A DNA stretch of 63,942 nucleotides, counting the filler, from Lenisia limosa (taxonomy: Eukaryota; Protista; Breviatea): the NCBI GenBank assembly GCA_001655205.1. It is 11 parts of 11 records of this genome, joined end to end, with 100 filler letters (N's around TTAATTAATTAA, not from the genome) between each part and the next. Parts side by side here need not be neighbours in the genome. Positions count along the whole stretch, not along the records: positions 47,335 to 52,179 come from LPNZ01009116.1; 10 more parts are not named here. One strand, 5' to 3'. Position 1 is the stretch's first letter; the number at the start of each line of letters is the position of its first letter. Positions 47,335 through 52,179 of the stretch are shown piece after piece. Position numbers and translations under genes: made by a program. Below the pieces are notes generated by a model that saw nothing but the letters and a program-made list of their open reading frames with translations, was not told the origin of the DNA and did not search any database.

Positions 47335-48943
47335 TATCGTAATTTGTGTTGATGGTATACCTATGTATGTATGGATATATATTTTCCATGTTCGCCCTCA
47401 ATAAAGTTGGACTGGTCTTAGATAGTTTGCTGTTAAAGTAACAAGACTGGGCTAGCCGTGCAATTACGATGGTAACGAGAAACCCATTTCAAATGCTTTA
47501 ATGTCGAATTTAGAAAATTAATTTTCTCAAAAAAAACGCCTCAGAAATAATGAAGGAGTATCTGGCCGAAATCAATTCACGCCATCACGTTTGAAATATG
47601 ATAAAGTGTACAATAAAACAAGACTAGTTGTAATATATCTTAGAACAGAGATAATTCTTTATCACGGTTGTATTAGTACAAATAGGAGGACGCTATCGCG
47701 GAAGGAATAACTAGAAAAGAGGGGCTTAAAGCAGGTCTCCACACCAGATTCATTACACAATCTTAACCGAGCCCCAAATCCATGAATTTTGGTCAACCTT
47801 ACACTCCGCGGTTGCATTGGTTTAGCTGCCTGCATTAAAGACACATAACACCAAAATGGTACTTGAAATGTAAGATGGTTCTTGGATTTGAGAGTCTCAA
47901 TTTTTGACTAAAAGCTTCGGTTAAGACTCATAATGCACCTGGCTGGTGGGCCCCTTTAATCATTGTTTAAAGAAGCGGGGAATGGGTGTTTAATTTCATT
48001 AAATGGGGTCATTCTTACCGGGATAAGTCTTGACCGATGCTCTGTGGTTTCCCAAGGACAGTAGGTCAAAACTTATCTGGTTACTGTATATTAAAAATAT
48101 GAACATTACTCCTTTAGATGGAAAAAAAAAAAAAAAAGCATTACTCCCTCACAGGGTTNNNNNNNNNNNNNNNNNNNNNNNNNNNNNNNNNNNNNNNNNN
48201 NNNNNNNNNNNNNNNNNNNNNNNNNNNNGTCTACCTCAAAAAATCGGTTCAAACTCCACATTATGTATTGTTATCTTAAACCGCAATGCCTATCCACTTG
48301 GGATTCTTATGAAAAGTTGGGATTACAATTATTTACATGAAGAAAGAGAAGAGTTTCGGGGAACAGTGAAGGAGGAGGTTCTTCAACATTTAAAGAGGTT
48401 CTCAGGATAAATGAACATTTTCAGCAGAAATTCAACTTTGGAGAGAGGGAAGAACCCACAAGACCGAAGAGAGAGAAACAAACCGGAGAGGATGATTTCC
48501 TTTTTGAAGGTTGTATTCAGGCCTTGGCTACAGAAAGTAAGAAAATACTACAGTAAGCAAGGTTACACCCATTATCTCGATGAAAGTCAAGGAGAAATCG
48601 AGGAAAGTCCCTCCCAAAACATAACTCACTCAACCCCTCTTACATAATGTCATCTCTATAGTATCTACTGATGACCAGATCACCCTTTGGGCCTAGGAAG
48701 AAGAACGCCGAGATCATTGTCCAAAACTAGGACTCTAATAACTAAGCTAAGCCTTGAAAGCTACCAGATATATATTTTTGAGCCAATAAAACAGGGCTAA
48801 TGTTTTGAAATCCGCGAAATAAAGGCATTTTGATACTTACAATAGTTACACTGTAATGCTTAAGTTGTTTTTGCGTGTAAAATTAGGCCGATTTACTAGG
48901 AGACGAGGAGAATTTACACTGTGTTCCTTATCTTATCATAAAA

Positions 48944-51900
48944 ATGGCAGACCAATCAGATGCTCGGCTTGAGGCTCTCAAAGGACTCGGTTCGTAACCT
49001 CTCAAAGCTCCTTCAGGCTTACTCTCTTCAGATATGTTCTCAGATGACAATTTGCCGTTGGCAAAGGCCTTCCTCCGTTTTGCTAAGAAGAAGGATGTCG
49101 ACTACACCACCGCGGTGGGTTTGGAGATCCAGTCATCCGTATCCTTCTTAACTGGGCTCTTAACCACTCTTCTTGCATTTCAAAACGACCAACATTGGCT
49201 TTTGAAACCGTGCAATTGTTTTGTTTGTCTTTCTTCTTTTCCTTGGTGTTTCACAAAGCAACTCCGAACAATTTTTTGAATGACAAAATTTGAAATTAAA
49301 GAGTCGGAACGAAGTTCTGGTTACAGTATGTCCCCTCTTCAAATTTCACAAATAATTTTACAATTAATTTCACAATTGATTGCACTGAGTCCCATTTTTT
49401 ATTGCGTATGCTGGGAAGGCTTACAGAAAGCTGTGTACAGCGTTGTACAAATTGGGGGAATTATACTACATTCATATCTAATAGAAGCATGATGATGTGC
49501 ACGGCATCGGCCTGATACAAGCTTGTTTTATATCTAATTTCTGTCTAATTGCGTGAATGCTGAACCCCATCCACGCATTCTGGAGTTCTGGTATTTGGGC
49601 TGGAGGCAGGGTTTTGGCTTGTCTAAAGGGGTGGCTCTTTAAAAAAACGTATGTTGTTGCAAAAAATAACCTTTTATTTTTTAATTTTGTTCATAAAAAT
49701 ACCACTTTTATCACTTTTTATAGACGTTGACACCCCCTTTTTAGATAAGCCGGGTTTTTTGTGTGATGTTTTGTGATTACTGGGTTTTAGTATACCACCC
49801 CAATTCATTGCGAAAAGGACATAATAGCAAAAGAGCGAGTAATCTTTATGATCCTAGTTTCAATGAGACTTCAGTGCAAATAGTGCGAGTGAACATACCA
49901 CATTAAATGTAATCTTTTTTTTTTTTTTCGGGTAACGCACAACATTTGAAATGTGTCAAGTATTCGGCTTCCCTGCGGGCGAAAAAGACGGTGAAAATCT
50001 CGATAGTTTCCCAGGATTATTGACAAATTCGTCTTTTTTGAGACCGTAGAGAAGCACATGTCAAGTACGTTAAAAGGATCATAATAATGCCGAAGCCGTC
50101 CAAATCGTCTCGTTTATTAGGCCTTGTTTGTTTTGTTTATTAAAACCCTTTTGTGTTATTGGTAGAGTTTGTATTTCTGTGTTTGTTTCCAATTTGAACA
50201 ATTTTTTTTGAGCGGATAGGTTTCTTTCCTTTTTGCTGATATCCAAGAATTATTGAAAATTCACAGCAACTTACGAAATTAGACGAAATTCACTGTCACG
50301 GACACTAACACCGGAGTGGTCACTTCAAAAGTGGTGTCCTTGGCGCCAGAACTTGAGGTCTGGGCTCTATTCCATATAAGGAAAGATTGAAGTGTTATTG
50401 CCATATTAGGAAGAGATAGTACAATGTTACTNNNNNNNNNNNNNNNNNNNNNNNNNNNNNNNNNNNNNNNNNNNNNNNNNTGTAGATGTGACAGCAGACG
50501 CCCTCGAAGGACATCCGGTTGCCTGCAATCTAATGACTGACACAAACACCATTATGGGGCTTATGGGGGGCAGTCTTGACCCCATGACTGCCATGTTCTC
50601 AGGTATGTTGTTGGTTGGGCTTTCTTACGGTCCTAAAAAGACCGGGTAAAAGCGATATTTATCGAGGATTTATCGAGAAATTCAGTCTATTTTGGGACCG
50701 TAGGGAGCCCATAGTTGTTGGTCAAAAAGTGTTAACTTCTATAGTGTGCATTGCAAATTATGATATATATAGAGTTGTTTTTTTATTTCTTCCAGGAATG
50801 CTGATGGTAGACGACTTAACCGCTATTACCATGTTTATTGCCTCTTTTGACTTCTCAATGGAAACCTTCCAAGCCTGTTGGGGGAGGGGGGGGGGGNNNN
50901 NNNNNNNNNNNNNNNNNNNNNNNNNNNNNNNNNNNNNNNNNNNNNNNNNNNNNNNNNNNNNNNNNNNNNNNNNNNNNNNNNNNNNNNNNNNNNNNNNNNN
51001 NNNNNNNNNNNNNATAACAAACACTACATTAAAAAATACTCATTATAACATACAAATTTTGACTTCTAGTCTTGGACCAACACGGCGAACTTTTTGATGG
51101 TGCTAAAACCGCGGAAGATGATGCTGAAAGTGGGGGAAAGGGGTATAACTACAATACTAAGGCAAAAGATGAGGTGAATTATTATACTTTAATCCAACAT
51201 CTCTTATACGTGGTGGTGTGGACGGCTCAGCCAGATACTATAATTCAATATATCTTATAAGCGTGATGGTGTAGGCGGCTTCGGCCAGATTTAAGCTTGT
51301 TTTTTTTTCTTCTCATTGTTATACTATACTACTACATATCGATCAGAAATACTTATAACATATGATATGCATATAGGTACAGGTATTATATAATATGTGA
51401 TATATACGGTTGAAACTGATTTTTCAGAAACTGAGGAAGGCGGAGAACAAACCGGGCCTAAGAAGCCCTCAGGAACCTTCGCAGTTTTCAAGCAGGAGGT
51501 TGGGGGGGGGGGGGGNNNNNNNNNNNNNNNNNNNNNNNNNNNNNNNNNNNNNNNNNNNNNNNNNNNNNNNNNNNNNNNNNNNNNNNNNNNNNNNNNNNNN
51601 NNNNNNNNNNNNNNNNNNNNNNNNNNNNNNNNNNNNNNNNNNNNNNNNNNNNNNNNNNNNNNNNNNNNNNNNNNNNNNNNNNNNNNNNNNNNNNNNNNNN
51701 NNNNNNNNNNNNNNNNNNNNNNNNNNNNNNNNNNNNNNNNNNNNNNNNNNNNNNNNNNNNNNNNNNNNNNNNNNNNNNTCTATCTTATTTTGTTATTTTT
51801 ATTCGCTTATGGAGTTTCAAATATTTTGCTATACTTACCTGCTTTAGGGTTCTCAATGCTATTTTTACTTGCTTAGGGGTTCGCAGTGGTTGGTAGGTCC

Positions 51901-51945
51901 GTCTCTAAGGGCTACGAGAAGTTGAAAACCAATGAAAAGTTTGTG
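48944..51945 (+). CDS. Protein with SCP2-like sterol/lipid-binding domain
   Basis: MADQSDARLEALKGL|DMFSDD... (42-nt intron 48990-49031), TKFTVTDTNTGVVTSKVVSLAPELE, CNLMTDTNTIMGLMGGSLDPMTAMFS|GMLMVDDLTAITMF resembles the SCP2 motif GxLDPxxAFxxGxLxVxGD. Confidence 0.55.
49964..50058. mobile_element. MITE family A, type II, degenerate
   Basis: GGCTTCCCTGCGGG...GAGACCGTAGAGAAGC around the family core. Confidence 0.6.
50616..50713. mobile_element. MITE family A, type II
   Basis: GGGCTTTCTTACGGTCC...GAGAAATTCAGTCT...GGGACCGTAGGGAGCCC; flanking direct repeat GTTGTTGGT. Confidence 0.8.
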
Positions 51946-52179
51946 GTGCAGTGTGGGTATAGGGAGGGGGGTGTAATACTACTTCTGGGATGCACGCAGA
52001 TCAGGCAAATGCAAATGTTTGGGTGAATAATATGCTGGGGACGCACGCAGAAAGCTGAGTACACAGAATTGTAAAGCAAATTGTTGGGTGAATTAATATT
52101 ATACTATAATCCAATATCTCTTATAAGCGTGATAGTATGGACGGCACCTTTTTTTTTCCTCATTGCTATATACTATTGT

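Follow-up and report, generated by a model that had tools for sequence, protein, structure and literature searches.

The host gene and its transcript

Positions 47335-52179 of the window (the whole 63,942-nt stretch of Lenisia limosa DNA, filler included) are a piece of eukaryotic draft scaffold with gaps. The piece has a G+C content of ~37%, five N runs and spliceosomal introns. It holds a gene on the + strand and several copies of a short repeat, here called Family D, most of them in the introns of that gene (Table 1). Breviatea are a poorly studied protist lineage. To our knowledge, breviate repeats are uncatalogued and transposons have not been described in Breviatea. Papers on Lenisia and other breviates describe transcriptomes and contain nothing on repeats or introns.

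The host gene was defined with a transcript. A HMMER search with a 41-aa exon against 1.8 billion representatives returned the window's own 53-aa ORF, P0001, and spurious repeat proteins. P0001 shares its 90% cluster with a single further sequence, P0007, which is a 411-aa Trinity product of EukProt set EP01086. The label of P0007, Lenisia limosa, rests on the EukProt name and may cover a contaminant of that culture. Comparison of P0007 with the piece by tblastn gave segments that were 100% identical, on the + strand; the genome piece and the transcript come from the same organism. Because the exons are 100% identical to P0007, the host gene lies on the + strand and its true splice sites are fixed. 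The P0007 exons were matched individually against the piece, and the junction codons were read directly from the sequence. One host exon is lost in the sequence gap at 51517-51778. Pfam detected nothing in P0007 at E 0.01 or better, and single exons of the host gene gave only a weak match to SCP2 (E 0.02-0.04).

Table 1. Host gene, splice donors and Family D copies in positions 47335-52179 (a slash marks the exon-intron junction)
Feature	Position	Strand	Remarks
Host gene	48944-51938	+	Codons 1-222 of 411; no difference from P0007
Host exons, first part	48944-48989, 49032-49114, 50283-50357, (gap)-50602	+	From P0007 and junction codons
Host exons, second part	50796-50876, 51070-51129, 51424-51498, 51877-51938	+	From P0007 and junction codons
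True 5' splice donor, intron 6	51130-51135	+	A/GTGGGG; GTGAAT of c51 lies 44 nt downstream
True 5' splice donor, intron 9	51939-51944	+	AA/GTTTGT; first GTGAAT of c52 (52023) lies 84 nt downstream
Copy c49	49401-49562	+	X-H-B-T; 290 nt inside intron 2 (49115-50282)
Copy c51	51159-51345	+	Copy flagged by the sequence-only reading; wholly within intron 6 (51130-51423)
c51, module H	51159-51179	+	GTGAAT at 51174
c51, module B1	51180-51236	+	
c51, module B2	51237-51290	+	
c51, GGC-TTCG-GCC mini-hairpin	51277-51286	+	3-bp stem; in B2
c51, tail T	51291-51318	+	T run and CTCATTG; followed to ~51345 by the beginning of one more B-like unit
Copy c52	51986-52179	+	Runs off the end of the piece; within intron 9 (starts 51939)
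c52, module X' (short)	51986-52007	+	
c52, module H	52008-52029	+	
c52, module X	52031-52072	+	
c52, module H	52073-52096	+	
c52, module B	52097-52145	+	Cut at GGACGGC
c52, tail	52149-52170	+	T run and CTCATTG
Fragment m50	50072-50120	-	49 nt, 3' half of module B; within intron 2
Fragment m47 (borderline)	47560-47629	-	1.3 kb upstream of host gene ATG

Copies and modular build of Family D

A sequence-only reading of the window had proposed Family D as a repeat family. This is borne out by comparison of the piece with itself (blastn) and by the count of the core, both far above chance. The stretch 49407-49506 matches 52031-52146 over 116 nt with 71% identity (E 6e-11), 51153-51226 matches 52067-52145 with 77% (E 4e-12), 51235-51303 matches 49463-49529 with 77% (E 1e-9), and 51235-51279 matches 52101-52145 with 87%. 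The 17-nt core of the previously proposed consensus was found three times with at most three mismatches, compared to 0.00 expected from shuffles. There are three + strand copies in the piece, 70-87% identical, the most diverged of which is c49 (70-77%). Copy counts and orientation refer to 47335-52179 only (4.8 kb, one gene and its upstream DNA). Since identity is only 70-87%, the family is old.

Two further pieces lie on the opposite strand. Fragment m50 matches 13 nt of the core exactly in reverse complement, GGACGGCTTCGGC. Its local score is 18.5, whereas shuffles average 9.7 (sd 1.5, maximum 15). Fragment m47 retains TTCGGCCAGAT and CGTGATGG and is weak, with E 0.001 in blastn and a local score of 17 against a shuffle mean of 11.3 and a maximum of 18.5. 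Copy c49 was absent from the loci listed by the sequence-only reading, and both m50 and m47 had been missed.

Family D is built of modules. Module X reads TATGCTGGGGACGCACGCAGAAAGCTGAGTACACAG..., and its occurrence at 52031-52072 resembles 49407-49445. Module H is GCAAATnGTTGGGTGAAT. Module B measures ~53 nt and ends in GGACGGCTTCGGCCAGAT, and the tail T consists of TTAAGCTTG, a T run and CTCATTG, with 51291-51323 resembling 52149-52170. The unit, previously put at ~100-150 bp, is longer, about 150-190 nt, once the upstream module and the tail with its T run and CTCATTG are added. The T run is internal, as conserved sequence follows it (only 1 of 2000 shuffles attains the tail score of 15). 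The tandem copies described at 51174-51340 and 52003-52150 are real and correspond to a 53-nt duplication of module B (B1/B2) and to a doubled 5' module (52008, 52073). Tandem Repeats Finder did not report the B1/B2 duplication because its copies are too diverged. Inverted repeats were not found at the copy edges, in agreement with the earlier description of the family as lacking TIR. A direct repeat, ATTGCGT(GA)ATGCTG (13-15 nt, p about 0.02), stands on either side of copy c49; it more likely marks the restart of a ~147-nt unit than a target duplication.

Relatives were sought by several routes. Core patterns had no match in metagenome contigs, viral contigs or prokaryote genomes, a full-text literature search for Family D strings returned none, and the stop-free stretch 51063-51257, which covers both exon and element, gave no candidate in a protein word search. 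Family D is apparently an undescribed repeat family, and an ordinary one on present evidence.

Splice donors, orientation and RNA structure

The GTGAATT of the element at 51174 had been read as the 5' splice donor of the intron. This is contradicted by P0007, which sets the donor at 51130: the transcript reads ...AEDDAE/KTEEGGEQ, which can be encoded only if GAA A, up to 51129, is spliced to AA ACT GAG, from 51424 on. With 51174 as the donor, the exon would gain 44 nt and the 250 residues that come next in P0007 would fall out of frame. At the donor of intron 9, P0007 reads ...KLKTNE/NYQQ compared to ...NEKFVV in the unspliced genome, and the GTGAAT motifs of c52 (52023, 52088) lie within the intron and are unused as donors in P0007. 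Family D supplies no splice site in this gene, and the true donors lie outside the element.

Two candidate extensions of the element or the exons were rejected. Exons extended to the GTGAAT of the element are ruled out by the transcript, and the open frames that run from exons into Family D are misleading: in a piece this AT-rich, chance alone should produce several ORFs of such a length, 60-70 codons. A Family D that reaches into the exon was likewise dropped, as the exon part beside module H scores 9, a value equalled by 213 of 1000 shuffles. The starts of introns 6 and 9 are slightly alike (p 0.02-0.14) because they share G-rich tracts just after the donor, which are common to four introns of the host gene. 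Copies c51 and c52 start 29-47 nt after the 5' splice site, nearer than random placement in long introns suggests (n=2).

Within the host gene, whose + strand is supported by mRNA, three copies lie in sense: c49 in intron 2, c51 in intron 6 and c52 in intron 9. Fragment m50, in intron 2, is antisense. The earlier claim that the family is always sense therefore fails in this piece. A ratio of three sense copies to one antisense fragment in one gene is too small a sample to judge bias. The host strands behind the original claim had been called by eye, in the same way that misplaced the donor at 51174. A genome-wide sense bias of Family D may exist; three of the four intronic pieces are sense here, the sequence-only reading lists seven further sense loci, and any real bias would need explanation.

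The GGC-TTCG-GCC motif had been described as kept in four copies. Within the piece it is intact in one + strand copy only. Among six aligned pieces, B2 has the intact mini-hairpin, B1 has the loop TCA, c49 has the loop ATCG, the 3' half is deleted in c52, m50 has GGC..GCA and m47 has GAT..GCC. The proposed check of stem covariation was run on these six sequences and gave none, with no inner-stem pair changed on both sides (six sequences give low power). Paired cells amounted to 66.7% in the alignment compared to a shuffled mean of 69.3%. Fold z-scores of the sense-strand modules against dinucleotide shuffles were +0.77, +0.70, -0.38, +0.96 and +1.05, that of the whole of intron 6 was +0.99, and the minimum-energy fold of B2 did not choose the UUCG register. 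A search of the whole piece against Rfam, with E up to 10, returned noise only and nothing at the copies, and ARAGORN predicted no genes and no tRNA-like head was found. The idea of an intron-borne structured RNA is thus unsupported, since the folds are no stabler than shuffles, the stem variants break pairs and Rfam is empty. GGC-TTCG-GCC looks like an inherited sequence feature of Family D rather than a selected RNA hairpin.

Origin of Family D and comparison with known systems

Family D is probably an old, unclassified, non-autonomous interspersed repeat that is carried as passive cargo in repeat-inflated introns. Intron 1 of the host gene is 42 nt long. Intron 6 (294 nt) minus Family D is ~100 nt long and keeps its own GT and AG, which is comparable to intron 1 and to intron 4 minus its MITE. 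Most of intron 4 (193 nt) consists of a MITE that has inverted ends and a target duplication of 9 bp, GTTGTTGGT, and a second copy of this MITE, flanked by TGTCAAGTA, is present in intron 2. Introns 2 and 4 were likewise inflated by the MITE, so that introns enlarged by repeats are usual at this locus. The host introns were probably short at first and lengthened by repeat insertions. Family D is a set of short modules, X, H, B and T, with a full unit of ~150 nt prone to local tandem duplication, and its copies are probably transcribed and then spliced out as passive cargo. We infer from its dispersal that it is a mobile element, which would have spread by transposition, class unassigned. Any sense excess would come from insertion mechanics or from selection on intronic insertions, not from function. 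Ends, target duplications and a coding partner of Family D were not found within the 4.8 kb of the piece, nor outside copies in the collections searched, with ends judged from three differently built copies. The earlier notion of a splicing-compatible mobile element survives in its general form, a repeat tolerating introns, and loses the donor of its own.

The lack of inverted repeats at the copy edges could also point to a strand-specific transposon without TIR or target duplications and with a genome-wide sense bias, spread by a Helitron/Helentron-like or hairpin-guided single-strand mechanism, the bias arising from the mechanism of insertion or from selection against antisense copies. The 3' part has a short GC palindrome with a T run behind it; this, the three sense copies compared to one antisense fragment in the host gene, and the nine of nine sense loci of the sequence-only reading (strands called by eye) are consistent with such an element. 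We nevertheless regard it as unlikely. The palindrome is followed by AAGCTTG, the T run and then conserved element sequence, so it is not subterminal; its stem is just 3 bp, no CTRR end comes after it, no TC start was seen and one fragment (m50) is antisense. A strongly sense-biased element throughout the genome, strand-specific and without TIR or target duplications, that arose by transcription-coupled or hairpin-guided single-strand insertion or from a decayed introner burst, seems distinctly improbable to us.

Insertions of an old introner might have created some of the introns, with splice signals that have since shifted. Introners can lack TIR and target duplications, bring a 5' splice site and add codons (PMC9860276). 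The short distance of c51 and c52 from their donors, the GTGAAT of the H module and the CTGAAA/CAGAAA shared by the junctions of intron 6 (weak, ~p 0.05) would fit this origin. Against it, the donors used in the transcript lie outside the element and the GT at 51174, 44 nt downstream of the true donor, is not in frame, c49 sits deep in a 1.17-kb intron, m50 is antisense, the exon part beside H is not significantly element-like, the likeness of intron starts is explained by shared G-rich tracts, and the copies are far from identical; together these make an introner origin very improbable. The intronic and mostly sense placement of the copies would also be expected of a functional intron-encoded small RNA with a kink-turn or C/D-box-like hairpin, for which sense orientation is needed for processing. 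In c49, AAGC-AUGAUGA-16 nt-CUGA-UACA-AGCUU can be read as boxes resembling C and D enclosed by a stem, and B2 can form an outer stem of AUAAGC and GCUUGU. Such a role is barely credible, as both boxes occur in c49 only (the others have GUGAUGG, GUGGUGG or GUGAUAG, and CAGA), the 16-nt spacing of the boxes is filled by the mini-hairpin and leaves no guide room, pairs occupy 64.5% of the outer-stem cells, which does not exceed shuffles, fold z-scores are positive, and Rfam offers noise only (snoU61, opposite strand, E 9.4).

Read as passive cargo, Family D is one more unclassified repeat, and shows how short native introns are inflated by repeats. The practical result is negative: the element's own donor, the UUCG hairpin and the absolute sense orientation fail against the transcript and simple controls. 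The sole mildly interesting point left is a possible genome-wide orientation bias. A strong genome-wide sense bias or an association with intron boundaries, if true, would let breviates join the lineages in which transposons shape or create introns.

Introners and introner-like elements are known from Micromonas, Aureococcus, fungi and many aquatic protists; they are diverse, some lacking TIR and target duplications and bringing a 5' splice site along (PMC9860276). Typically, introner ends fall at or within a few bases of both intron limits, the element or its target duplication contributes at least one splice site in use, and many highly similar copies each make up an intron of a different gene. 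Family D shares with them an intronic and mostly sense placement, no evident TIR or target duplication and a GT motif on the 5' side. In contrast to introners, Family D copies do not define introns: c51 (51159-51345) and c49 (49401-49562) end inside introns 51130-51423 and 49115-50282, and the GT of the element is found 44 and 84 nt downstream of the donors that mRNA supports, with the GTGAAT motifs at 51174, 52023 and 52088 not serving as P0007 donors. The copies are also diverged rather than near-identical, with one copy deep in a long intron and one fragment antisense.

Helitrons and Helentrons have a 5'-TC and a 3'-CTRR terminus, the latter preceded at 10-15 nt by a hairpin, insert between A and T (or T and T) with no target duplication, and depend on an autonomous partner with Rep/helicase. 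Like their non-autonomous members, Family D is TIR-less, has a GC palindrome in its 3' part and contains variable internal tandem units. It differs in having no TC...CTRR termini and in that its 3-bp palindrome precedes more conserved sequence, the order palindrome, AGATTTAAGCTTG, T run and CTCATTG being kept in three copies. SINEs have a tRNA, 5S or 7SL head with an internal pol III promoter, a 3' A-rich or simple-repeat tail, and target duplications. No such head was detected at the copies with ARAGORN (0 genes) or Rfam (to E 10), the T run is internal, and an A tail was not seen at copy ends on either strand. C/D box snoRNAs carry a C box (RUGAUGA), a D box (CUGA), a terminal stem and a guide of at least 10 nt. 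They are intronic and require sense orientation, and Family D has motifs of the GUGAUG type and CUGA/CAGA; its boxes, however, are unconserved, with no guide room, no Rfam match and no structural signal. In the MITEs of the same gene, both the inverted ends and the target duplications of 9 bp are clear, whereas Family D has neither. Like Family D, these MITEs are short and non-coding, lengthen introns several-fold and are spliced out passively.

Host protein

The product of the host gene (48944-51938, + strand) is represented by P0007, which is 411 aa long in the transcript. A Pfam search with P0007 returned no family at an E value of 0.01 or better. Single exons of the gene gave a weak SCP2-like match (E 0.02-0.04), and the C-terminal 250 residues are rich in K, E, S, T and P and look to be of low complexity.

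Repeats in and near the host gene

A MITE that is palindromic and has inverted ends (GGCTTCYCTRCGG...) occurs twice in the host gene. Intron 4 consists largely of the second copy, which also gave rise to spurious Rfam matches to MIR319 and MIR1862. A foldback and a tandem repeat were also observed, the latter shortly upstream of c49, the Family D repeat copy in intron 2. Within c49, perfect C-like and D-like boxes are flanked by a stem (AAGC-AUGAUGA-16 nt-CUGA-UACA-AGCUU). Since the other Family D copies are without this box pair, its occurrence in c49 is probably due to chance.

Features of the host gene and its surroundings
Feature	Position	Location	Sequence detail
Foldback	48018-48085	upstream of gene	ACCGGGATAAGTCTTGACC ... 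GGTCAAAACTTATCTGGT
Intron 1	48990-49031		42 nt
12-nt tandem repeat, 3.7 copies	49342-49385	intron 2	AATTTCACAATT
C-like/D-like boxes	49480-49530	c49, intron 2	
MITE copy 1	49963-50058	intron 2	9-bp target duplication TGTCAAGTA (49954-49962 / 50059-50067)
MITE copy 2	about 50617-50711	intron 4	9-bp target duplication GTTGTTGGT on both sides
G-rich intron start	50877		GTTGGGGGAGGGG
G-rich intron start	51130	intron 6	GTGGGGGAAAGGGG
G-rich intron start	51499		GTTGGGGGGG
G-rich intron start	51939	intron 9	GTTTGTGG...GGGAGGGGGG

Intron starts and intron length

G-rich tracts lie directly 3' of the donor in four introns of the host gene. Two assembly gaps, at 50877 and 51499, open within these post-donor G runs, and the poly-G at their edges may therefore be no sequencing artefact but genuine sequence that interrupted the assembly. 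Repeats fill the gene's long introns. Together with the very short intron 1 of the same gene, this suggests that native introns are short in this organism.
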